NCBI GenBank assembly: GCA_950097015.1
Contig: CATNEN010000005.1
Coordinates: forward strand, 1,860,001 to 1,924,000
From: Macrostomum hystrix
Taxonomy: Eukaryota; Animalia; Platyhelminthes
DNA length: 64,000 nt
Reading direction: 5' to 3'
Both the position numbers and the translations under genes were made by a program. Below are positions 3,093-43,400 of this stretch, in pieces; positions within the stretch are counted from its first letter, which is position 1, and each line of letters begins with the position of its first letter. A model generated the notes under the pieces. The model was not told the DNA's origin and ran no database searches. It worked only from the letters and a program-made list of their open reading frames with translations.

Positions 3093-3887
3093 CGGCTCAC
3101 AGTAGCAATGCCGAACTCCACATGGGAATTAATCATCTTCGTGAATGAAGCCGGCTCAGGGAAAATACTCGAGGACTGGCTGCAGTACATGAAGACAGTG
3201 CAAGAAGAGAAATGAAAATTAACGCATTGAGCTCAGCTGATAACAGTTCATCTCTCATGTCGGGGCAGTTAAGCAAAGCGTGTTGTTTTGTGACTGCTGC
3301 CCACTAAAGTAAATTATTCATGTTTTATTTAAACAGCTGTCTGTTGGCAACTGTTAGTTCAAATGAAACTGTAACGATTCCTTTTGTGACATTCAGGAAC
3401 CCCGAATAACGAATGTACTTTAAAGGACAGTTCAAACACTCTTTCGATATAATTATTGTTAAGCAAAAGAATGTAACCGCAAAGTCACTGATTGTTAATA
3501 AATTTTATTGAGTCTCGTCGGGAAGAGAGAAAAAGTTCAAGATGGACTCTGCACTGAGCAATGACGGATTTCACAGCATTCAAACACTATTTATTCTATG
3601 TTCTTAATTAATTTATTTGTACAGTAAGCAACAGTAAGCAACCTATTAAAACAAATCAACTTGACTGGGCCAGTGTCAATGGCACAATCCGTCATATTGT
3701 CCATAAAACATCAATATGCTTTACGGTTGGACACATTTTAGCTTATAAAAATATACATGGACTTCTACAGCTGGATGCTAGCTATAGAAGTCCATGGTTG
3801 CATACAAGAGGAACTCTTATCAGAATTAAAATATTATTGAAGCCTTGACAAGTCCGCACTTATAAAGTAATCCTATTATATATTGAT

Positions 3888-7690: not shown

Positions 7691-8444
7691 TTATGTAGAT
7701 AAGGGCGATAAAAATGCTTGCATAAAAATCTTCAACACAGAATTTATCTGCAAGACAGGCTATGACAAAAATCCCATTTCTAAATGGGATCGTTGATCAA
7801 ATTTCAGATTTCCTGATTTCCTGAGCAGTGATGTGAGATGACTGACTAATTAGGCGAAAAATCTTCAACCTAGGCCTGAATCTGACACCCACAAGAGCAT
7901 TGCTTTGAGGCAGATTAAAGATTTCAGCAAAATAATTATATGAAAGAATGCGATAGAGCCAATTGAACTGATTGAAATATGAAGACAATAACCCCATTCC
8001 TTCTCTTCAAAGGCCTGCTTGGTTTCACGACTTTCTCAACACCTAAATTTCCCAATCCCAAAGCCGAAACTCAAATCCGCCTGACAAAGACATCTATCTA
8101 TCACTTGCTCTCAAAATCCCTCCTGTCACGGATACCAGGCGACTACTGCTCAAAGAAAAATAAATAAAGATTGACGTGACCCATTGTTGAGAGTTTTCCG
8201 TTGACAAGGTTTCAACTGAAAGTTAAGTTCATGTTATTTATAAATCATCTATCGTTGCTATGCAATGAGTTGGTGCCTGGCACTGGGTACAAACGGAGGT
8301 CACAGAATAGGAAAACACTAGTTCCTTTCCGGCTAAACTTGATAGATGAGTTGGGACAACTCTGGTTTGGGTGACATTGCTGTGAATGGGATTTGGCTTG
8401 TAGGCAGCGGCAGCTGAGAAAAACACGAAATGGGATATTTAAAA

Positions 8445-8820
8445 AGAAGTGAATGGGATGAAAGATGTGGGGTTTGGAGGAAATGGGATGGGATGAAAGG
8501 TGCGGGATTTGAACGGAATGGGATGGGATGAAAGGTGTAGGATTTGGAGGAAATGGGATGGGATGAAAGGTGTGGGATTTGGAGGAAATGGGATGGGATG
8601 AAAGGTGTAGGATTTGGAGGAAATGGGATGGGATGAAAGGTGTGGGATTTGGATCGAGGAAATGGGATGGGATGAAAGATGTGGGATTTGGAGGAAATGG
8701 GATGGGGTATGAAAGGTGTGGGATTTGGATCGAGGAAATGGGATGGGATGAAAGATGTGGGATTTGGAAGGAATGGGATTTAAAGGAAACGGGGTGGGAT
8801 GAAAGGTGTGGGATTTGTAG
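8445..8820 (+). repeat. ~35 bp purine-rich satellite (GGATGGGATGAAAGGTGTGGGATTTGGAGGAAATG)
   Basis: Visible tandem units. Confidence 0.92.
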
Positions 8821-9789
8821 AAAATAGGGCGATGTGAAATCGATGGGATTTGAAGGCACTGGCGTGGAATAAATGAATTTGGGGCTCGTGCTCTGAATTT
8901 GTAGAAAGAAATCTACATGCGCCATCAATGAATGTGCTAAGCATCTCATTGGGGTGAATATCTGTAATCAGTCTGTTTACGTGTTGCTCTGACAGTCTAA
9001 CCGCTTCTTAAATAAATAAGTAATAGTAAATAAATAAAGTAAATAAATTTCTTGATATAAGCAATACTAAGCTGACGGCAAAATGCTTATACTTCTACTG
9101 AGCAAGTAGTCTGATAAGAAAATAATCTTCAAAAAGTTCCGACAAAAAGTCAGTCTATGAAGCTACGAGTATAACAATCAAGTCTAAGTTCCGTTTGTTA
9201 AATTATTATTGCCACAATTCAGCGACTATACACATAATAGTATGTACACCTATACACCTGACAAAGTTGGTGTATTCTTCTAAATTTCAAAGTAAAAAGC
9301 CGAATTCATCTCAATTCTGGAAATGAAAGCCACACACACAACATAAAATGATGACGGCTTAGCGATTGCATCGAATTTTTGTAATTAATTTCTGTTTTTT
9401 GAAGTATGCAAATGAAAGCAACAGCCAAGTAAGACAGACCTTTAGGCAGAGTCAGTTTTCGAGTTGGTTTTTTATTTCACCACCCGTAGACGCAACACTC
9501 ATCCGTTGCCCCTTCTGCTGAAGAAATCGCTGCCGCATGAACACCAGGGGCACGGCTTTCGAGTGTTGCTTGTCATTTAATCTCTCCGAAATCTGGCTGC
9601 TGTCAGTGACCAGTTCTCGCATATCAGCAAAGCAGGCAAAATTTTCACGCAATATTCTCTCACAGACCTGGTGCGGAACAAGAAGCATGTGTTTCTCGAT
9701 TCAAAACAAAATTTCTTTAGGAGTGCATATTAGTTAGAGAATACTATTTTCCTTTGAAACTATTTCCGACCGCTCGATACCACAATGGA

Positions 9790-9875
9790 CTTTTTGAGAC
9801 CACTTTGGACCTTAGGAGACTGCTATGGACCTTAGGGGACTACTTTGGACCTTAGGAGACTGCTTTGGACCTATG
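9790..9875 (+). repeat. 20 bp tandem repeat (TTTGGACCTTAGGAGACTGC), about 4 copies
   Basis: Visible tandem units. Confidence 0.85.
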
Positions 9876-10959
9876 TAGATTTACAATAAAAACTTCCAGG
9901 ACGCTAAAACCAAGTCGTGTCTCTTAGAGCTATCTGTCGTTCTTTATCAGACGTATTTTCTGAAACTTTTACCAAAAAGGAGTCCTGATAAAATAAACCA
10001 ACAGTAAATTGTACAGTACTATTTGCATCCCTCACCCGAGCGGAAGATGTTCGTTCTCCCTGAATTTCAATCTGAGCGAATTTCGTCCACGCGTCTGAAC
10101 CTCGAGTTCGCCGGTACAGAATCGGTCGCAGAATTCTCAACTGACATCGGGTCAGGATAGCAATCTTTTTTATGTTTTGCGCATAGCAGTTTAATATGTG
10201 CAACAAGTCAGGACTCAGCATCAATACGAACACTAGGTGAGAATTGAGACTCTTTACTTCGCTCCCAAAGCCTGCAAGTTAGTAGTTTATAAACATGTCA
10301 TATTAGATACCGTACGCAGGCACAAACCCACACAGGGTGTGTGCAGGCATTGTTACGCTCTCACTGTGCCTTGTACGTTCGCCCAAATGAACGTGGCCTC
10401 GCCCCAGGGACCTTGATAGTCATGTATGGCATGATTTTCAACAGTGGAACTACCAAGAGGGGGGAATTCCCCCCTGAAAATTTTTTGTGCTGCACCCGAA
10501 CGGACCAGCGCAAGCACACGAAACTCAAGAAAACGGGCCAACCTTTTGTTGCGCATCTTCTGAAACAAGAATCAAGTCGCCAGCTCTTCCGACCGTTGAG
10601 ATATTCAGTGTTTCTGGCCGAAGGTCATGCAGATTTTTCTCATAAGCGCTAGTGTATTGCATACACCCATATTACATGATTTAGCACTGCGCCTCAGTGC
10701 GGCATTGCCAGGCCATTCAAAATTGATCAGCATGTCACCCGAATGTGCCCGCACATCTCCGTCTTCAGTGGTCACCTACCTTTATCTAGACGGATTTGCT
10801 GGACCTTCAAGTGCTACAATAGGTGGAACTATAAGGCAACAATGGACACGCTGACGCGAATATCTTTAATTTCACAGATCAAGCCAAAATATTCGGCGCA
10901 GCTCAACCACAGTACACCATCACCTAGTCTGTCAACCAATCAGTCACCACCCAACGCTG

Positions 10960-14629: not shown

Positions 14630-17515
14630 GCTAAAACAGAGTTTGAATCATGGCTAAACCAGAGTCTGAATCATGGCTAAACCAGAGTCTGAATCATGGC
14701 TAAACCAGAGTCTGAATCATGGCTAAACCAGAGTCTGAATCATGGCTAAACCAGAGTCTGAATCATGGCTAAACCAGAGTCTGAATCATGGCTAAACCAG
14801 AGTCTGAATCATGGCTAAACCAGAGTCTGGATCATGGCTAAACCAGCGTCTGAATCATGGCTAAACCAGAGTCTGAATCATGGCTAAACCAGAGTCTGAA
14901 TCATGGCTAAACCAGAGTCTGAATCATGGCTACACCAGAGTCTGAATCATGGCTACACCAGAGTCTGAATCATGGCTACACCAGAGTCTGAATCATGGCT
15001 ACACCAGAGTCTGAATCATGGCTAAACCAGAGTTTGAATCATAGCTAAACCAGAGTCTGAATCATGGCTAAACCAGAGTCTGAATCATTGCTACACCAGA
15101 GTCTGAATCATGGCTCATAGCTAAACCAGAGTCTGAATCATGGCTAAACCAGAGTCTGAATCATGGCTACACCAGAGTCTGAATCATGGCTAAACCAGAG
15201 TTTAAATCAAAGCTAAACAAGCGTCTGAATCATGGCAAAACCAGAGTTTGAATCATAGCTAAACCAGAGTCTGAATCATGGCTAAACCAGAGTCTGAATC
15301 ATGGCTAAACCAGAGTCTGAATCATGGCTAAACCAGAGTCTGAATCATGGCTAAACCAGAGTCTGAATCATGGCTAAACCAGAGTCTGAATCATGGCTAC
15401 ACCAGAGTCTGAATCATGGCTAAACCAGAGTTTAAATCAAAGCTAAACAAGCGTCTGAATCATGGCAAAACCAGAGTTTGAATCATAGCTAAACCAGAGT
15501 CTGAATCATGGCTAAACCAGAGTCTGAATCATGGCTAAACCAGAGTCTGAATCATGGCTAAACCAGAGTCTGAATCATGGCTAAACCAGAGTCTGAATCA
15601 TGGCTAAACCAGAGTCTGAATCATGGCTACACCAGAGTCTGAATCATGGCTAAACCAAAGTCTGAATCATTGCTACACCAGAGTCTGAATCATGGCTCAT
15701 AGCTAAACCAGAGTCTGAATCATGGCTAAACCAGAGTCTGAATCATGGCTACACCAGAGTCTGAATCATGGCTAAACCAGAGTTTAAATCAAAGCTAAAC
15801 AAGCGTCTGAATCATGGCAAAACCAGAGTTTCAATCATGGCTAAACCAGAGACTAAATCATGGCTACACCAGGGTTTGAATCATGGCTAAACCAGAGTTT
15901 GAATCATGGCTAAACAAGCGTCTGAATCATGGCTAAACCAGAGTCTGAATCATGGCTAAACCAGAGTTTGAATCATAGCTAAACCAGAGTCTGAATCATG
16001 GCTAAACCAGAGTCTGAATCATTGCTACACCAGAGTCTGAATCATGGCTCATAGCTAAACCAGAGTTTGAATCATGGCTAAACCAGAGTCTGAATCATGG
16101 CTAAACCAGAGTCTGAATCATGGCTAAACCAGAGTCTGAATCATGGCTAAACCAGAGTCTGAATCATGGCTAAACCAGAGTCTGAATCATGGCTACACCA
16201 GAGTCTGAATCATGGCTACACCAGAGTCTGAATCATGGCTAAACCAGAGTTTGAATCATAGCTAAACCAGAGTCTGAATCATGGCTAAACCAGAGTCTGA
16301 ATCATGGCTACACCAGAGTCTGAATCATGGCTCATAGCTAAACCAGAGTCTGAATCATGGCTAAACCAGAGTCTGAATCATGGCTAAACCAGAGTCTGAA
16401 TCATGGCTACACCAGAGTCTGAATCATGGCTAAACCAGAGTTTAAATCATAGCTAAACAAGCGTCTGAATCATGGCAAAACCAGAGTTTGAATCATAGCT
16501 AAAACAGAGTTTGAATCATGGCTAAACCAGAGTCTGATTCATGGCTACACCAGAGTCTGAATCATGGCTCATAGCTAAACCAGAGTTTGAATCATGGCTA
16601 AACCAGCGTCTGAATCATGGCTAAACCAGAGTCTGGATCATGGCTAAACCAGAGTCTGAATCATGGCAAAACCAGAGTTTCAATCATGGCTAAACCAGAG
16701 TTTCAATCATGGCTAAACCAGAGACTAAATCATGGCTACACCAGGGTTTGAATCATGGCAAAACCAGAGTTTTAATCATGGCTAAACAAGAGTTTGAATC
16801 ATGGCTAAACCAGAGTTTGAATCATGGCTAAACAAGCGTCTGAATCATGGCTAAACCAGAGTTTGAATCATGGCAAAACCAGAGTTTCAATCATGGCTAA
16901 ACCAGAGTTTGAATCATGGCTAAACAAGCGTCTGAATCATGGCTAAACCAGAGACTAAATCATGGCTACACCAGGGTTTGAATCATGGCTAAACCAGAGA
17001 CTAAATCATGGCTACACCAGGGTTTGAATCATGGCTAAACCAGAGTTTCAATCATGGCTAAACAAGCGTCTGAATCATGGCTAAACCAGAGTTTGAATCA
17101 TGGCTAAACAAGCGTCTGAATCATGGCTAAACCAGAGACTAAATCATGGCTACACCAGGGTTTGAATCATGGCTAAACCAGAGACTAAATCATGGCTACA
17201 CCAGGGTTTGAATCATGGCTAAACCAGAGTTTCAATCATGGCAAAACCAGAGTTTGAATCATGGCTAAACCAGAGACTAAATCATGGCTACACCAGGGTT
17301 TGAATCATGGCTAAACCAGAGACTAAATCATGGCTACACCAGAGTTTGAATCATAGCTAAACAAGCGTCTGAATCATGGCTAAACCAGAGTTTGAATCAT
17401 GGCTAAACCAGAGTTTGAATCATGGCTAAACAAGAGTTTGAACCATGGCTAAACCAGAGTTTGAACCATGGCTAAACCAGAGTTTGAATCATGGCTAAAC
17501 CAGAGTTTGAATCTT
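14630..17515 (+). repeat. 23 bp satellite (TGAATCATGGCTAAACCAGAGTC), about 125 copies
   Basis: Period 23 counted at 14701/14724; variant units recur in blocks. Confidence 0.97.
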
Positions 17516-17539
17516 GGCTTCCCCAGCGTTTGAAAAATC

Positions 17540-18478
17540 AACGTCAACTGGGGAGTCATCATCAAATGGGGGATCATCATCAACTGGGGGATCATCATCA
17601 ACTGGGGGATCTTTGTCAACTGGGGGATCATTGTCAACTGTGGGATCATTGTCAACTGGGGGATCATTGTCAACTGGGGGATCATTGTCAACTGGTGGAT
17701 CGTTGTCAACTGGGGGTTCATTGTCAACTGGGTGATAATCATCAACTGGGGTATCATTGTCAACTGGGGGAACATTGTCAACTGGAGGAACATTGTTAAC
17801 TGGGGATCATCATCAATGGGGAGTCATCATCAACTGGGGGATCATTGTTAACTGGAGGATCTTTGTCAACTGGGGGATCATTGTCAACTGGGGGATTATT
17901 GTCAACTGGGGGATCATTGTCAACTGGGGGATCATTTTCAACTGGGTGATCATCATCAACTGGGGGATCATCATCAACTGGGGGATCATTGTCAACTGGG
18001 GGATCATTGTCAACTGGGGGATCATTGTCAACTGGGGGATCATTGTCAACTGGGGGATCATTGTCAACTGGGGGATCATTGTCAACTGGGGGATCATTGT
18101 CAACTGGGGGATCATTGTCAACTGGGTAATCATCATCAACTGGCGGATCATTGTCAACTGGGGGTTCATTATCATCTGGGGGATCATTATGAACTGGGGG
18201 ATCATTGTCAGCTGGGTGATCATTATCAAGTGGGGGATCATCATCAACTGGGGGATCATTGTCAACTGGGGAATCATTGTCGACTGGGGAATCATTGTCA
18301 ACTGGGGGGATCATTGTCAACTGGGGGATCATTGTCAACTGGGGGATCATTGTCAACTGGGGGATCATTGTCAACTGGGGGGATCATTGTCAACTGGGGG
18401 ATCATTATCAACTGGGGAATCATTGTCAACTGGGGGATCATTGTCAACTGGGGGATCATTGTCAACTGGGTGATCATT
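17540..18478 (+). repeat. 18 bp satellite (CATTGTCAACTGGGGGAT)
   Basis: Visible tandem units; explains the 6-aa-periodic ORFs. Confidence 0.96.
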
Positions 18479-35171: not shown

Positions 35172-35918
35172 GTACCCTAAGCAATGAGTTTCTGAAATCG
35201 AAGTTTAGTAATGGCAGTTCTTAAATCACATGAACACGTTTTATAATTTTTTTGTCAAAAAAGCTTACTTAGTGAGATTGTGAGCAAGCTTACTTAGAGA
35301 TCCTCAACTTCATATTACTAGTATTAATTTTATTTGATAAGTTGAAAAACAAGATAAAAAGTCAGGATAACAAATATTTTGTTTGAAAAAAAACTGACAA
35401 TAAAACAGCACTGGATATAAGGAGAAGTACTCGCTAGTCGCAAGTAGGCCTGTGTATTTCGAGTCTGTAGTTTATGAAATTACAACATACTTATTTCCAC
35501 TGCAGAATAGTCAGATATTATAGCAGGCATTTATTTAAATAGCGTTTTTGTTTGCATAGACAAGGTTAAAATATGGAAAAGCGACACTGTAAGGTATTTT
35601 TCAATGAGAGCAGAATATATTTCAACCGGAATTTAGATGACAAAAATCAAAAGACAGTAGAATCCTACTGGTTTAGTTAAGACTAACCGTTTCAGTTTCT
35701 CGTTACGTTTTCCTGGACCTAACCTGGCCTATATTAATTTGTTTACATGGGAATACATACTATTATTAATAACACGGAGAGTTTAACCTACCAAAGTAAG
35801 CACAAATTTGTAGAAAAAAAACAATTTAACAGACAAAGCAATAGACCGATAGTCACTAACAATAGGCTTCTATTTCATCGACTCCAGAACCACAGAGGAC
35901 GATGAGAAAATCGATATA

Positions 35919-36680
35919 TTAAGCCTTCTTCTCGGCTTCCTTCTTGGCGAGTTCGGCCTTTTCTAAATCTTTGATAAGTTGTTCCACTCGTGACTGCGGC
36001 AATAGGCTCAAATAGGTGTTAGAATCGCGTCTAGTGAATACGGCTATTTCAACTTTGTCGGCTGACAATTTACTCATGGTCATAGATTTGTTGAGCACTT
36101 TAATAGTGAGACTGAGCGCTTCATCAATGCTCATATTCTCGGCGTGTTCCTGATCCAGCATGCTATTGGCTGCGGCGGCATTGCTGCCAATGCATGTGGC
36201 CTTCCAGCCGCTGAAGTTGCCGCTGGGGTCGCTTTGGTAAAGCTGATAGCCGTAGTGCAGATCCCAGCCAGCGTACAGCATGCTGACACCGAACGGTCGC
36301 CTACCGCCAAACATTGTATAGGCGTGTTTGATATCGCAGATAGATGACACCAGTTGTTCAACAGGAATTGGCTCCTGGTACTGAAGCAAGTAGCGTTGAG
36401 CGCTAAGACGCATCTCATCTATTAGCACATTGGCATCGGCTGTAATACCGCCAACTGCAACGCACATATCGTCATTGATCTTGTAGATCTTCTCGGAGAA
36501 GTTAGGCTCGTCTAATAGTTTGTTAATATTACGCCGCTCAGCAGCCAGAATGATGCCGTCGCGAGCTAGGATGCCCATACAGGTGCCAGCGTGGCCAACA
36601 GCCTCCATGGCGTACTCAACCTGATAAAGGCGACCCTCCGGAGAAAAGGTTGTAGTGCGAGTGTCGTATCTGCGAGCCAT
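35919..36680 (-). CDS. PSMA4: Proteasome subunit alpha type-4 (alpha3), intronless, 253 aa
   Basis: [28 protein letters not shown]; [16 protein letters not shown]; [17 protein letters not shown]. Confidence 0.97.
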
Positions 36681-37105
36681 GTCTCAGTTTACAAAAGTAT
36701 GTTTTGTTTATTTAAATCGATTAGTTCTTTAAGGCTTAGATTAAATTCTTATCGTCCTTAGCCACTGGAAAGTGTAGGCGGGATTGTGTACAACCGGTTC
36801 AGTCTGTGGACTGGGGGCCTGAACTACACATAATGAACAGACCTAAATGACTAACTAAAAAACTATGAAGTAGCATTTTAGTTGTCCGCTTGTATAATTT
36901 AAAATTTGAAAACAGAAATAAAAGTGTACAGTGAGGTAAATATATTTAATAAAATATGACGCCGCTGTCGAAGCAGAACTTGAAATTCTTCCCAGAGGCA
37001 AAATTGGCGAATCTAAAATAAAAATAGTGAATAGTTTTTATTTCTTAGAATAGGCTAGTGAACTGCAAAATGTGTGTATTAATAAGTAGAAGTGCAAATA
37101 AAAGT

Positions 37106-37185
37106 TCAGCAACGGATAAAAAGTCACCAACAATGGTTACTAGCATAGTAACTAGGTTCATTTGGGGAAAGAAGTTTGTCATCAT
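37106..37185 (-). ncRNA. SNORD12: Box C/D snoRNA, SNORD12/snR190 family, copy in intron 8
   Basis: ATGATGA-CAAA-CTTCTTTCCCC-AA-ATGA ... ATCCGTTG-CTGA. Confidence 0.88.
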
Positions 37186-37374
37186 TTTGTATAGAAAATT
37201 AAGTATAAGAACGAATAGAAACGTTGAAATTGTTAATAGAACTCACGACATTATTCCGTTGTTTGTTCTTGAACTTAATCTTTTCTGCGAATCTGCAAAT
37301 TAAATTTATGGTAAGATTAACAATGTTGATTTCGTTAAAAAAACATCAAACTAATTTTCAAATACGACCGTAGC

Positions 37375-37456
37375 TCAGTAACGGAATGAGAATCATTAAT
37401 AGGTATTGATCACATTCTTAATGACCAATCATTTGGGGAAAGAAGTTTGTCATCAG
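37375..37456 (-). ncRNA. SNORD12: Box C/D snoRNA, SNORD12 family, copy in intron 7
   Basis: CTGATGA..CTTCTTTCCCC-AA-ATGA..TTCCGTTA-CTGA, with an AGC/GCT terminal stem. Confidence 0.88.
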
Positions 37457-37659
37457 TAGCTTAAAGTACTAGATATAAGACTGTTTCAATAACTTTATTC
37501 TTCACTTAAATGTGCTATCGCTTACCTGAAGACAGTGGGCCCTTTCTGCACTATCAGGATAGTGGGATCCTGCAATAAAATTAGTTTATTAGGAAATGTT
37601 GCGTCTGATTAATATAATCTTAATATAAAGCACGTGAATATGTAAAGCCAGGAAAAATT

Positions 37660-37738
37660 TCAGCAACGGATTAAGAATCACAAAACATGATCACATTCTT
37701 TTATGATCAATCATTTGGGGAAAGAAGATTGTCATCAC
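37660..37738 (-). ncRNA. SNORD12: Box C/D snoRNA, SNORD12 family, copy in intron 6
   Basis: GTGATGA-CAAT-CTTCTTTCCCC-AA-ATGA..ATCCGTTG-CTGA. Confidence 0.88.
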
Positions 37739-37912
37739 TATTCCAGGCGATTAAAAAAAATTGCCAGCACAGATTACTTACCAGTAGTGCGTCTTGTATC
37801 AGTTAAGCCGTTTTAGCCAGTGAAGCCTAAAAAGTTATCGGTTTTTTGTTTTTAAATAATTTTACGTAACAAGGCCGGCAATTTTTATGATGACGACGAG
37901 AAGCTCAATACA

Positions 37913-37993
37913 TCAGAAACGGAATGACTATCATAAAAGTTATGACCATTTTTCACTAATGGACATCAATTGGGGAAAGAAGTTTGTCATCAT
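37913..37993 (-). ncRNA. SNORD12: Box C/D snoRNA, SNORD12 family, copy in intron 5
   Basis: ATGATGA..CTTCTTTCCCC-AA-TTGA..TTCCGTTT-CTGA. Confidence 0.88.
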
Positions 37994-38212
37994 CCAAAAG
38001 AAAAAAGTATTTTTTTACTTAAAATGTATAACTGAATAAAAAATAAACGTCAGAATATACTCTTACCTTAAAGATATTATTGGTGAAGACAACTTGTTCA
38101 TGCTCTTCTGCTCCATTGGGGATTCTGAGGGTCACAGAAAACTATGAACAGTTGGCACTGATTGGTAAAAATTATATTAAGAAGTTGAACAATCTAAAGA
38201 TTTAGGTTTAGC

Positions 38213-38290
38213 TCAGCAACGGAATAAAAATCACAAACTATGATTACATTCAGTGTAACCAATCATTTGGGGAAAGAAGTTTGTCATCAT
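38213..38290 (-). ncRNA. SNORD12: Box C/D snoRNA, SNORD12 family, copy in intron 4
   Basis: ATGATGA..CTTCTTTCCCC-AA-ATGA..TTCCGTTG-CTGA; GTTTA/TAAAC terminal stem. Confidence 0.88.
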
Positions 38291-38524
38291 TAAACTATCA
38301 ATATAATTAACAGTAGAAAGAAAACGATATTTCCTCCCTAATAGAAGACCACGGGTATTTCAATTACCCACTACCTACTCCACGATAACTCCCTAAGCCA
38401 ATGTCTGATTTTCGTGTAAGTCCACCAAGAAGATGGACTGGACACCACCATATCAACTTTCAAATCCGTCAGACGCTAGGCGAATCAAAACTCGATTAAT
38501 TAATATCAGTCCATCTGCCGTAGG

Positions 38525-38673
38525 AACCTTTTTTCTCAGCAACCCAGTCACCAGGGTCCCCATCATCAGGGCTCAGTGTCAAGCAGCCGTCATTGAAGTG
38601 CCGATAGGTCGCCGCCGATGCTCCAGACGCTGATGATGGGACCCTGGTGACTGGGTTGCTGAGAACAAAGGTT
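38525..38673. repeat. ~45 bp inverted repeat (arms 38525-38569 and 38630-38673, 60-nt loop)
   Basis: The arms are reverse complements with 1 mismatch and 1 indel. Confidence 0.9.
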
Positions 38674-38973
38674 ACTGAGACTTGTTGACATAGTTTGTGG
38701 AGTCGACGAGGTTCCATGTTGAAATATTGTGAGAAGAAAAACATATGCCTACATTGGTGGTCTTTGCCATTTGAAATATCCGTGTCTTTTTACTGTTAAT
38801 CCAATTGGTCTTAAAACACAACACAAACTACTTACCAGATAGTAGTGTTAAGTATAGTGGCTTATGCCATATACTCTTTAGAAGCCAAGCGAAACTAAAA
38901 AGCAGATAAATAATTCATATTTGAAAGAGCTCTTATGGTAAACTGGTCAAATATGTACACCGCACAGTTTATG

Positions 38974-39055
38974 TCAGAAACGGAATGACTATCATAATAG
39001 TAGTGACCATTTTTACATTAATGACCATCAATTGGGGAAAGAAGTTTGTCATCAT
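38974..39055 (-). ncRNA. SNORD12: Box C/D snoRNA, SNORD12 family, copy in intron 3
   Basis: ATGATGA..CTTCTTTCCCC-AA-TTGA..TTCCGTTT-CTGA. Confidence 0.88.
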
Positions 39056-39254
39056 TAGACTGATCGGAAAATATAAATTGACACAATAGATAGTACTCAC
39101 TGGAAACTAGCAATGCAAATCGTTTTATATACTCGTAGTTGTAGTTCATTTTAGCAACCGATTTTTAACCTAAAATGGCAAATAACATCATATTAAATTG
39201 CAGCAGTCACACAAGACAAAAATATTATCGTAAAAAGGAGCACTAATTTTTATG

Positions 39255-39337
39255 TCAGAAACGGAATAACTATCATAAAAGTACCGATCATATTTCACTA
39301 AATGATCGATCAATTGGGGAAAGAAGTTTGTCATCAA
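39255..39337 (-). ncRNA. SNORD12: Box C/D snoRNA, SNORD12 family, copy in intron 2
   Basis: TTGATGA..CTTCTTTCCCC-AA-TTGA..TTCCGTTT-CTGA. Confidence 0.86.
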
Positions 39338-39544
39338 GCAATAAAGGCAGCTCATCTAAAGGATAACGAGATGAAGATTCGTATTTTGTATAGCTAGCTA
39401 GTATACTTACCAATATAATTAATAGTACACTTCAGTTTGGATCACATAACAACAGGACTCTAAAATGAGAATGCGTAAAAAATATAAGCAAAAATTATTT
39501 AATATTTGCCAGCATTTTCTAACGCAAATATGCAAATATGCTGA

Positions 39545-39636
39545 TCAGGAACGGAATGTTCAATCATAACAATTTATGGACTAGTACTTTAACATAGTCA
39601 ATAAGTTTTCATATGGGGAAAGAAGATTTTCATCAT
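39545..39636 (-). ncRNA. SNORD12: Box C/D snoRNA, SNORD12 family, longer and most divergent copy, in intron 1
   Basis: ATGATGA-AAAT-CTTCTTTCCCC-AT-ATGA..TTCCGTTC-CTGA; 92 nt. Confidence 0.84.
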
Positions 39637-39974
39637 AAGCGTTGTCAGTTTAATAATCTAGTGTTACGGTGCAGATAAGGTGATTTAGAAAGGCTTACCT
39701 TGTAAGAAGATTCGCTGACACAAGCTGAAAGATTGATAACACTTGAATGATTTACAAGCAGACTAACTAAATGTACCCTATAAGACCTTAAATCAAGACT
39801 CTTTGCTGAAAAAAGAAATAAAAAAGCAAACACCAACTGTTCTTTGTCCAAGGCGCAAAAGAGTGCAATTTCTTTCGCTTAGAGAAGCAGCACAGTCCCA
39901 CTAAAACTAGAATTTATTTTTGCAGTTAAACTGAGACGGCTCCTAAACATTTTAAAAAAATCCGTTATTCATCA

Positions 39975-40459
39975 TTAGGAGTTGGCGTTGGGTCCACGAC
40001 GCCTGCCGCCTGGCAAGTTAACGGTGGCCACAAAGCGCTTGTTATACTGATTACGACGCTTAGCCCTACCAGTCTTACTCTTGCGCTTCTCCTGTTTGGC
40101 CACTTTAGGCGTCTGGCCGCGCACTTTACCGGCGCGAGCCAAGGAGCCGTGTACTTTACCGCCGGGCAGTAGAGGAAGCACCTGAAGTTTTAGACAATTT
40201 ATAGATAAAATGCATTATTTTACTACTGATACTAGTAGTGTAAATGAATCTAACAGACCTGAAGCAAATCACAGCCGCTAGTTGCTAGGGACTCTTCATC
40301 TAGCAGGGCTGCACCAGATGAACCGAACACGCCCAATTGCAGAGGCGACAAGCCGCACTGGCTAGCGGCCCAGATTTTGAGTTCGGCCACAGACGAAACC
40401 TGATTAGTGACCTCAGCGTTGGTGACGCCATTTGGCAAAGTGACAATAACCGGTGCCAT
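39975..40459 (-). CDS. FAU: Ubiquitin-like FUBI / 40S ribosomal protein eS30 fusion, join(40459..40259,40181..39975), 135 aa
   Basis: GG|[24 protein letters not shown]...GPNANS; 77-nt GT-AG phase-0 intron; AATAAA at 39913-39918. Confidence 0.96.
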
Positions 40460-43400
40460 GATTGGTTAGTTAGGCTAGTGTTAGCTTTTGCTTGTAGAAA
40501 TATAGATGTAGTTGCGGTACTGCCTGCTGCTAACAGATGTCTGGGGCTGCTAAAGATTGAAGAGATGTGAAATAATTTGTGATTTTTCTGATTTATATAC
40601 ACAATAACTTTCTTCTTATTACACCAAAACATGGAGTTTCGAGTTAGTTTAGTTTGTTACCCAACTGTACTAACCCTTCCTAGATTCCATCTTTATACCT
40701 TGAATAAAAGCCAATTGTATTGTTATTAAGTACTTAAAAAACAAATGGGCTGTTTAGGCATTGTCACTAAAATTTACACTGCTACATCAATACTTCTCTA
40801 ACAAAATATCTAGCATTAAAAAATGACCTTTCTGTTTCTTTATATTTCTGTAAACATTGTGTACTATACTAGTTAGTTCATTTTGCTCTATGAAGTATAC
40901 AATTGTCTCTCGCACAAGGTCCTTCAGCTTGTTTCCATGGCAAGGGCACATAAAATTGGGTCATAGCTGTGAAGAGAAGCAGAATGTCATTCCTAGTAAT
41001 GGCTTTGATAGTCATGATGAACAAGCAGCCAAGTCATCCCTCATTGGTTGGCAGTTTCATGAGCAGAATGAAAGAAGAACCAGGCAACTGAGAATAGATC
41101 AGCTGGAAGAGGAAGAAGAAACCACGAGACTATACCAAAGGATAACTTCCACTTGTTTAACTGGTGTTACCTATGTGGCACACCCAGGACATAAACAGAA
41201 CCAAGAAATAAAACTAGCAAAGAACAGAAGGACAAAAGACTGCTCATAGAATAAGTGAATATTTCTGACAATAATTTGGAAAAATGTAACTAAATCTGCA
41301 AATAATAGTATAAGAATGTATTATGTTATTTTATTAATACATATTGCATAAAAAGACAATAAAAATAAGGAGCCTGATTGGGAAATAAAAATATATTACA
41401 AGAAACACACACACAAATGTGCAATATAAGTGAGCAATTGAGTGAGAAAGAATAATAATAAAAAAGGTATCTTGAGAAAGAACTGAGAATATGAGTTTTT
41501 AGAAGCTACGTATGTATACTTAACTAGCTAGCCAGGTCTGACTTAGCTACTGAATGCAAGGAAGTAATAAGTGGAATGTCAAATGTGCTGGCTAGTCAGA
41601 TTAAGGGCTCAAACCAGAAAAACATTTGCAAAGGTATAAAGAAAAAAGGGAAAGATATGATCAAAAGTGGAGATGATAAATTTTTTAGTCTGTTCCTGAG
41701 ATCTAGATTACTCAAATCTAAGAAAAGAATAGAATAATATTTGAGAAGAATCACTATTGTGAATTTTGATTGTGAAAGCTATTTTTTTCATTTCTTACAA
41801 GGAATTAGCTATTTAACACATCAGTTTACCTAAGAATTTCCTAAGAATAATAAAAAGAAATTGAAGGAGAAAGAGTACAAGAAAAAGTTAATTGTGCATA
41901 GGAATAATATTCTCTAATACCTGTTTCAAACACACAAAAGAAATTGCAATCAGCAGAAGAAACAAGAAAAGGAAGTCACAAATCTAGCCACATCACATAG
42001 TCAACAATTAAAAGAGGCCAGGCCACCATAAATTAAAATTAACAGAATGTACTATCATCAATGAAAAAGATGAATCTGAAGAAGACAGAATCTGATAGAG
42101 AGCTAACGTGCCAAATGAAGAATCCAAAGATGAAATATATGTAGAACAAGAAACATTCCCTGACTGACAATGAGGCAAGAATAATTGAATAAGTTAGAAC
42201 AGCCGAACAGGTAAAGGCAAACAATGAAATGGACAAGACCAAAGAAATAAACACGATTGACTGAGAGAGTAAACACCCAGGAAATAAACACACAAAAAGG
42301 AGAGAAATGTACAGGCAAAAGGAGCCCATGGCTATAATCTGAGACCACAAAGTGGCAAGGCCAAAAAATGAACAGTGGAGAGCCTACCCTAGGCCTAGGA
42401 AGAATAGTGTTACCTAATGCCCAGCCAGTTACTAATGGCTTTGTGCCTTGTGAGCGCTATAGGTGATATCTACCCTAATGATTTGGATAGGCCCTAACAA
42501 TGGAGAACAGTGGTAGGCCTAGCCTAGGCCCTAGTTGACTCTGATTGGCATTTAAATCAATGTTATTTAACTAAAATATGTTTGGGTCACTTATTACTTA
42601 AAACAAAAACATACAAATACTAAATAGTGGCATATTCTTCAACAAACCAATATCTGCCGCACAAGTTTCTACTTTGCTGGCTTTGCTATTGTCCCATTGA
42701 TTTAAGGGCATTGACTGATTGACTTAAGCGTTTATTGGTTGTGGCTGCAGGAGTAAAAAAGTTCCTTGTTTCTTGTTTTATTAAATAAATAAAAAATACC
42801 TTCCAGTCAAGAAATATTAGAGACAAAGAAACTGTCCCGGCGGCCATAAAGCGGCCAGACAACTATTAGGTGAGTGGCATGAGGAACGAGAGACATGCAA
42901 CCTGACACAAAAAGGAAATTAAAAGTTTAAGAAGATAAAGCCAGAAATTACACGCGCAAATTTTAAACAAGTAAGTATTATTAGACAAATTCAATTGCTA
43001 GAAATACAATTTTTATTAATAACTATCTATAACACAATTGCTATAACGCATTATATAATTTATTAATAAAAAAAATAAATCAAAAAACTATTTGTTTATT
43101 TACAATAAGACACGGCTTTGGCAAAGTTTAAAATTGTCGTAAACTGTGATTGCGACAATATTTGGGATTACGCCTTTAACTTTAGAAAAAGTTTATAAAG
43201 TTTATCACACAAGCCCTTTTACTTTAAAACCATGCTACTTAACTACTTCACTGAACTTTACAGCCACAGTGTTTTTTTAGTTGGTTCCTATCTAATTTAC
43301 CAATATTCCAATACATGTTAATTTTAATAGCTTTTATATACTACAGATAAATATTCTACAATTAAAATAATAAACAGAGGTGTATTATAGCTATAAGCAT

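Follow-up and report, generated by a model that had tools for sequence, protein, structure and literature searches.

Eight SNORD12/snR107/snR190-type box C/D snoRNA units in the introns of an expressed, previously unannotated host RNA between FAU and PSMA4 of the flatworm Macrostomum hystrix

The closest described systems to the locus reported here are the human SNORD12, the fission yeast snR107 and the budding yeast snR190 small nucleolar RNAs (snoRNAs). Human SNORD12, SNORD12B and SNORD12C lie in consecutive introns of ZFAS1 and guide the formation of Gm3899 in 28S ribosomal RNA (rRNA), position 3878 in the old numbering (PMC11971394; PMC8677010). In Schizosaccharomyces pombe, snR107 methylates the equivalent G2483, and a second element located before box D is required for biogenesis of the 60S subunit (PMC11971394). 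Yeast snR190 pairs through its box A at helix 73 and was predicted to direct methylation of G2395, but acts as a chaperone without methylating (PMC8536666). Here we present a summary of a related locus in a stretch of 64,000 nt (64 kb) from Macrostomum hystrix (contig CATNEN010000005.1, positions 1,860,001 to 1,924,000), referred to as the window; all coordinates are those of the window. The locus, at 36885-39805 on the minus strand, is very likely a spliced RNA without an open reading frame (ORF), whose sole evident product is a set of eight paralogous, intron-encoded box C/D snoRNAs. It is flanked by FAU/RPS30 and PSMA4, as had been stated in the first-pass annotation of this DNA. Such a gene arrangement is known; the locus is a previously unannotated example of it, with an expressed host and eight units of the SNORD12/snR107/snR190 type.

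The guide CTTCTTTCCCC occurs in eight exact copies, all on the minus strand between 37164 and 39625 (both strands of the 64 kb searched), and no further copy was found on either strand of the window, even with one mismatch allowed. At up to one mismatch, 1.46 occurrences are expected by chance per 64 kb, and none of 100 shuffles attained eight. The guides belong to eight box C/D units on the minus strand (37106-39635), which measure 77-91 nt from box C to box D; the eight units of about 80 nt on this strand, as first described, are borne out in number, strand and anatomy. Box C (TGATGA), box D (CTGA) and the internal D' and C' boxes are present in all eight. The 5' half of a unit consists of box C, 4 nt, CTTCTTTCCCC, a spacer of 2 nt that is kept in every copy, and a D' box that reads ATGA or TTGA. 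The 3' half is made up of a variable middle segment, a C' box of the form RTGAYNN, 11-12 nt ending in TCCGTT-N, and box D.

The units are numbered in the direction of transcription, and all lie on the minus strand. U1 (39545-39635), with a length of 91 nt between its terminal boxes, these included, has diverged more than any other copy and carries a 12-nt guide, TCTTCTTTCCCC. The remaining copies form two subfamilies that are interleaved along the gene, with U1 as an outlier to both. Subfamily A, with D' TTGA and C' ATGATAG, comprises U2 (39255-39336), U3 (38974-39054) and U5 (37913-37992), and subfamily B, with D' ATGA, comprises U4 (38213-38289), U6 (37660-37737), U7 (37375-37455) and U8 (37106-37184). 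U6 also has a 12-nt guide, is bounded by an external stem of -10.5 kcal/mol and gives the best match to the Rfam SNORD12 model. The fold stability of single units is indistinguishable from that of shuffles (z -1.4 to +0.9), which is what one expects of C/D snoRNAs. Searched with a covariance model of the eight units, the window yielded no additional copy. The model's weak matches at 17538-17979 were rejected as snoRNAs, being part of a 21-nt tandem repeat. The surrounding interval (17300-18200, minus strand), the source of these spurious matches, consists of two adjoining tandem arrays: about 30 copies of a 21-nt, cccccagttgacaatgat-like unit that possibly codes for a PPVDND repeat, and an array of a 27-nt, ttcaaactctggtttagccatga-like unit.

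Evidence for the host transcript comes from contigs assembled from RNA runs X1 and X4 (organism A), the runs having been located via PSMA4. Six of the eight predicted introns, those holding U3 to U8, are removed in the contigs of these two runs, and all are GT..AG introns on the minus strand. Intron 3 (38895-39100), with U3, is removed at joint 38894|39101 in X1, with a matching loose end in X4; intron 4 (38125-38835), with U4, at 38124|38836, and intron 5, with U5, at 37825|38066, both in X1 and X4. The joints for introns 6, 7 and 8, with U6, U7 and U8, are 37568|37781, 37292|37526 and 37012|37247, respectively. The spliced host with one unit in each GT-AG intron, as well as the junctions predicted for it, are in this way found in RNA for six introns and expected from splice signals for introns 1 and 2. 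Two further runs, X9 and X10 (organism label C), yielded PSMA4 and FAU contigs that differ from the window at few positions (35800-36765 and 39844-40550); the strain or species behind label C is very close to the present one, and neither run gave a host-gene contig.

The host transcript has nine exons on the minus strand and is non-coding; its 5' end is predicted, whereas its 3' end is taken from RNA contigs (36887 in X1, 36884 in X4). Exon 1 (39699-39805) is predicted and starts at an acceptor-like site (T-rich tract, CAG) that may be a spliced-leader acceptor, and exon 2 (39411-39459) is predicted from splice signals. Exon 3 (39101-39169) has a 3' boundary given by RNA and a predicted 5' boundary; the host contigs stop 26 nt into this exon, at a depth of 7-10. 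Exons 4 (38836-38894), 5 (38067-38124), 6 (37782-37826), 7 (37526-37569), 8 (37247-37292) and 9 (36885-37012) are all given by RNA contigs, the last of them with an ATTAAA signal near its end. As assembled, the host model is about 605 nt long when spliced, has a GC content of 36% and looks polyadenylated. The longest ORF that begins with ATG has 25 codons' worth of product (25 aa), and a frame starting from the AUG with which the spliced leader ends would meet a stop after six codons, in line with the AT-rich exons without an evident ORF that had been described.

The layout of the introns is uniform. Every one of the eight holds a single unit, with 79-93 nt between box D and the 3' splice site, and the internal exons measure 43-69 nt; the earlier figures of about 70-95 nt and about 44-75 nt were essentially right. 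Intronic C/D snoRNAs have a conserved placement about 50 nt upstream of the branch point, which favours splicing-coupled assembly of the small nucleolar ribonucleoprotein (snoRNP) (PMC8162545), and the spacing found here is in keeping with such coupling. Seven of the introns measure 206-241 nt. Intron 4 is 711 nt long because an element of about 509 bp (38299-38807) is inserted in it, 10 nt upstream of box C of U4, and would measure about 200 nt without it. The element has terminal inverted repeats of 35 nt (80%) and an inner inverted repeat of 39 nt (95%). Its core is also present in unrelated transcripts (contig loose ends at 38607 and 38640); since these RNA contigs come from elsewhere in the genome, the element belongs to a dispersed, transcribed repeat family.

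The target was assessed on L003, a eukaryotic LSU (large-subunit rRNA) fragment confirmed by Rfam, which reads ...AAGGGAACGGGCTTGG...GCGGGGAAAGAAGACCCTGTTGAGCTTGAC. The guide forms 11 contiguous Watson-Crick pairs with GGGGAAAGAAG in this fragment (12 in U1 and U6), with duplex energies of -20 to -21.5 kcal/mol. GGGGAAAGAAG makes up the 5' strand of helix 73 in the LSU, where domain V has its root, beside the peptidyl-transferase centre. Because the spacer measures 2 nt, it is the third G of GGGGAAAGAAG that pairs with the guide nucleotide five positions upstream of D'. As judged from this pairing, the target site is that of human SNORD12 (Gm3899), S. pombe snR107 and yeast snR190, and the match of guide and spacing to the SNORD12/snR190 site, which had been claimed at first, holds, with the third G as the selected nucleotide.

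Set beside the vertebrate SNORD12, SNORD12B and SNORD12C of ZFAS1, the Macrostomum units share a D'-side antisense element against the same helix-73 sequence, the same 2-nt spacer and the same G, and both sets consist of several paralogues in consecutive introns of a non-coding host (PMC11971394, PMC8677010). They differ in copy number (eight versus three), in the guide, which is CUUCUUUCCCC versus a U-rich vertebrate consensus, and in the D' box, which is AUGA or UUGA where the Rfam SNORD12 consensus aligns CAGA. The Macrostomum host also differs from ZFAS1 in belonging to a probable spliced-leader operon and in having exons without similarity to anything compared. The ZFAS1/GAS5-like host proposed in the first-pass annotation is acceptable as an analogous arrangement, but homology of the host to ZFAS1 is unlikely. 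Hosts such as UHG, GAS5 and the SNHG genes likewise carry one snoRNA per intron between short exons without ORFs, at a conserved distance from snoRNA to 3' splice site (PMC8162545); unlike the Macrostomum host, which carries one guide eight times and has a probably trans-spliced 5' end, they carry differing snoRNAs and have 5'TOP promoters. The SNORD115/116 arrays differ in that the repeat units of the Macrostomum gene have no similarity outside the snoRNA.

The yeast RNAs snR107, from an intron of S. pombe mamRNA, and snR190 of Saccharomyces cerevisiae agree with the Macrostomum units in the antisense element for helix 73 (ASE1 or box A), in a further conserved element that lies directly upstream of box D, and in non-consensus C' and D' boxes; snR107 further shares an intronic origin in a non-coding RNA (PMC11971394, PMC8536666). 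Unlike the Macrostomum units, both are single-copy and lie beside U14; Rfam found no U14 at threshold in the 64-kb window. The second element of the yeast RNAs measures 11-15 nt and pairs with LSU domain I (25S 333-343 in S. pombe), whereas the invariant part in Macrostomum is TCCGTT only, and the long internal stem-loop by which snR190 binds Npa1 contrasts with an internal hairpin of 7 bp in Macrostomum. An antisense sequence against the helix-73 strand that is identical or nearly so is found in TtnuCD5 of Tetrahymena and snoZ103 of plants; in TtnuCD5 it takes the form CUUCUUUCCCC + 2 nt + CUGA. The guide of TtnuCD5 stands before box D and not before D', and in both RNAs the likeness is confined to guide and boxes (16-20 bits, below threshold). 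A metagenome scan for box C plus guide returned 120 loci, of which about 118 were chance matches in prokaryote-like contigs. The other two, L040 (1068-1142) and L075 (778-856), look like real, unannotated box C/D snoRNAs and lie on metagenome contigs with a GC content of 28-31%; they have terminal stems, the same helix-73 guide, the same 2-nt spacer and D' boxes reading ATGA and CTGA, and neither has CCGTT before box D.

When the eight units are aligned, 39 columns are invariant; they take in boxes C and D, the guide, TCCGTT and the UGA of both internal boxes. From D' to C', by contrast, copies share 21-71% identity, and the 40-nt flanks on each side of the units show 31%, against 30% expected from base composition. 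Invariant elements amid a diverged middle and diverged flanks point to purifying selection as the apparent cause, and not to recent copying or gene conversion, which would have homogenised the middle of the units too. When the whole gene is compared with itself, every alignment runs from box C to box D, or to within a few nucleotides of the latter; with flanks at random identity and alignments bounded by these boxes, the copies are by all appearances old, and the snoRNA parts alone have been retained. No trace was found of the serial exon-intron duplication that had been put forward for the origin of the gene, similarity between modules being confined to the interval from box C to box D. Either shared descent or a processing constraint could account for the uniform architecture of the introns, so that serial duplication is neither supported nor excluded.

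Position 1 of D' and position 6 of C' normally form a C-G pair in the non-canonical stem of the K-loop. In the Macrostomum units these positions are A:U in five copies and U:A in three, a Watson-Crick pair in all eight. Because the three U:A units form one subfamily, this covariation probably goes back to a single compensatory event. The 7-bp hairpin between D' and C' is also kept, with compensatory changes at three of its pairs. Judged by these patterns, the units are selected, functional-looking snoRNAs.

The TCCGTT element is invariant in all eight units and ends one nucleotide before box D (the position numbered 1 before the box being variable); six units read ATTCCGTT. It sits where ASE2 or box B lies in the yeast RNAs. 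When G.U pairs are allowed, the sole complements of TCCGTT in L003 are AACGGG, located 21 nt upstream of the main target, and AGCGGG, overlapping the target; as 6-mers, these are statistically not compelling. Extra pairing beside the methylation site has been reported for snR190 and for HBII-99 (= SNORD12) (PMC3116282). The host itself provides the best complement of the element, CAACGGAATAA in exon 8 (37251-37261, minus strand), located 4 nt ahead of the last 5' splice site. Perfect pairing extends over 11 nt in U4, 10 nt in U2 and 7-8 nt in the remaining units; an 11-nt match was attained in only 4 of 2000 shuffles of the spliced RNA, a post hoc observation.

In M. lignano the gene order FAU - gap - PSMA4 - FAD-oxidase gene occurs twice (L001 and L002). 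The gap of 2.4 kb holds satellites and one box C/D snoRNA (9140-9229 in L001, 8919-9008 in L002), whose terminal stem is perfect over 8 bp and whose guide differs, reading AACTTTCCCTCACA ahead of a D' box of the form ATGA. This guide is presumably complementary to GUGAGGGAAAGUU in LSU domain I. The covariance model of the eight M. hystrix units matches this snoRNA weakly, at 21 bits, and no Rfam family matches it at threshold. As the gap holds one different snoRNA, the FAU-PSMA4 slot is a snoRNA host in both Macrostomum species, and its cargo differs. The interval in L001 is filled, at 7800-8840 and 9380-9920, by a satellite with a repeat of about 17 nt, ggtatggttccaaatta, and by a unit of about 77 nt that includes an inverted repeat (ccatagac...gtctatgg) and is present about seven times. 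In Sparganum, Heterobilharzia and Echinococcus, the 10-kb flanks of PSMA4 contained nothing SNORD12-like and no called S30/FAU gene. As for synteny in other flatworms, which had been suggested as a check, the gene order is kept in M. lignano, where the cluster is absent, and no SNORD12-like match lies within those flanks in the three others.

The standard pathway would make snoRNAs of the Macrostomum introns as follows. After splicing, the introns would be debranched and trimmed to the snoRNP assembled on the box C/D kink-turn. The antisense element upstream of D' in each copy would then pair with GGGGAAAGAAG, placing the third G five nucleotides from D', and the most likely role would be fibrillarin-mediated 2'-O-methylation of this G, equivalent to human 28S Gm3899 and S. 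pombe Gm2483. An additional or alternative role as a placeholder on the rRNA of the pre-60S particle, as for yeast snR190 and snR107, is possible. Transcription of the host would probably take place within a spliced-leader operon, FAU -> host -> PSMA4, and the supply of snoRNAs would in that case be coupled to a ribosomal-protein gene. Release of the RNAs of about 80 nt, methylation and operon transcription are what we infer from the features described above.

Several observations weigh against a host of eight SNORD12-type guides. The RNA runs are contigs of apparently poly(A) libraries and not of small RNA. Introns 1 and 2, with U1 and U2, and the 5' end of the host have good splice signals and lie outside the coverage of the RNA contigs. 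The target was read from L003 and not from the 28S rRNA of the animal itself, and both D' (AUGA/UUGA) and C' (UGAUAG/UGAUUY) are off consensus. The gap between FAU and PSMA4 in M. lignano contains no CTTCTTTCCCC and has no DNA similarity to the M. hystrix host or its exons. Nothing in the window matches an Rfam family at gathering level: SNORD12 (RF00581) is the best family, its model matching five of the eight units at E<10, yet the highest score is 23.4 bits (U6, E 0.15) against a gathering score of 43. Of the SNORD12 assignment made at first, the guide, the spacer and the site stand, and formal membership as judged by this score fails. We class the units as functional equivalents and probable orthologues of the SNORD12/snR107/snR190 group, the failed Rfam score test notwithstanding.

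Whether the host is a gene of its own bears on the term "dedicated host gene" used in the first-pass annotation, which is right as far as a spliced RNA without ORF between FAU and PSMA4 is concerned; more likely this RNA is an operon cistron. PSMA4 is an intronless ORF (35919-36680) whose protein is 93% identical to that of M. lignano (next relatives about 70%) and whose coding DNA is 82-84% identical; a look-up of the exact protein found it not to be on record. FAU and PSMA4 mRNAs carry a leader tail in all four runs (loose ends 40550 and 36765), whose sequence is that of the 3' portion of the spliced leader published for M. lignano (PMC8629364). Protein, coding DNA and leader together place the window in a Macrostomum that is distinct from M. 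lignano. The spliced leader is in this manner conserved between two Macrostomum species though their coding DNA differs by about 16%. The FAU mRNA ends at 39843-39856 (three runs), about 37-50 nt from the first acceptor-like site of the host, a strong one at 39806 (T-rich tract, CAG), and the 3' end of the host at about 36885 lies about 120 nt before the leader acceptor of PSMA4 (36765). Intergenic distances in M. lignano operons have a mode of about 100 bp (PMC8629364), and gaps of about 40 and 120 nt, being typical of flatworm operons, suggest one polycistronic unit; the recurrence of the gene order in M. lignano, twice, favours the same view. The host is on these grounds probably a cistron of a FAU -> host -> PSMA4 spliced-leader operon. 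A fuller proposal has the host without independent promotion, as an inner cistron of the polycistronic unit FAU -> host -> PSMA4 (-> D2HGDH-like), which spliced-leader trans-splicing and polyadenylation would resolve. We find it evenly poised: in no contig is the leader joined to the host or are two cistrons bridged, exons 1 and 2 do not appear in the RNA contigs, and the depth of the host is 20-100 times below that of its neighbours, which could reflect instability or separate control. The host exons were also considered as an alternative 3' untranslated region of FAU and rejected, the FAU contigs of three runs ending at 39843-39856 and no joint linking FAU with the host.

The units might also be real snoRNPs that do not methylate but serve as placeholders or chaperones, shielding the helix-73 strand and a second rRNA segment during early pre-60S folding, with eight copies meeting a stoichiometric need. 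Yeast snR190 offers a precedent, with the same antisense element, an unmethylated G2395 and degenerate C'/D' boxes (PMC8536666), as does S. pombe, where 60S biogenesis involves the element before box D in a manner that does not depend on methylation (PMC11971394); the non-consensus D' and C' of Macrostomum and its invariant second element would agree with such a role. The covariation that keeps a Watson-Crick pair between C' and D', however, suggests a working K-loop, the spacer length is kept in all eight copies, and the site is methylated in human and S. pombe (PMC8677010, PMC11971394), so that we regard a purely non-methylating function as rather unlikely, bearing in mind that the two roles are not mutually exclusive. 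A more elaborate version, in which the eightfold copies are not redundant but stoichiometric placeholders on domain V's root helix, as for snR190, while the element before box D pairs with host exon 8 in a feedback from snoRNA to host splicing or stability within the ribosomal-protein operon, is a conjecture that we hold to be quite improbable. Least credible of all is that the units are decaying, non-functional copies of a snoRNA-derived repeat, retroposed or duplicated, that lie in introns by chance. It would account for homology that ends exactly at the mature snoRNA ends, for the mature RNA not having been observed and for the absence of the cluster from M. lignano, but decay would hardly leave the functional elements invariant in eight of eight copies while the remainder diverged and the flanks became random, nor produce compensatory changes in the K-loop and the internal hairpin. 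Each intron, moreover, holds a single copy that reads in the sense direction and lies equally far from the 3' splice site, and neither poly(A) tails nor target-site duplications were found at the units.

What is less ordinary about the locus is its copy number, its probable place in an operon, downstream of a gene for a ribosomal protein, and the fact that a congener has different cargo in this slot. It leaves the current understanding of snoRNA biology unchanged and adds to the SNORD12/snR107/snR190 group a flatworm member with an unusually high copy number, at a time when this group is being studied as a case in which one RNA both guides methylation by the peptidyl-transferase centre and chaperones early 60S assembly. 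It also exemplifies a snoRNA host that is probably one cistron of a spliced-leader operon with a ribosomal-protein gene at its head, and indicates fast turnover of cargo, M. lignano having a different, single snoRNA in the syntenic slot. The eight independently drifting copies amount to a natural mutagenesis screen of the constrained positions of such an RNA, namely box C, the guide, the length of the spacer, the UGA of D' and C', the covarying K-loop pair, TCCGTT and box D.

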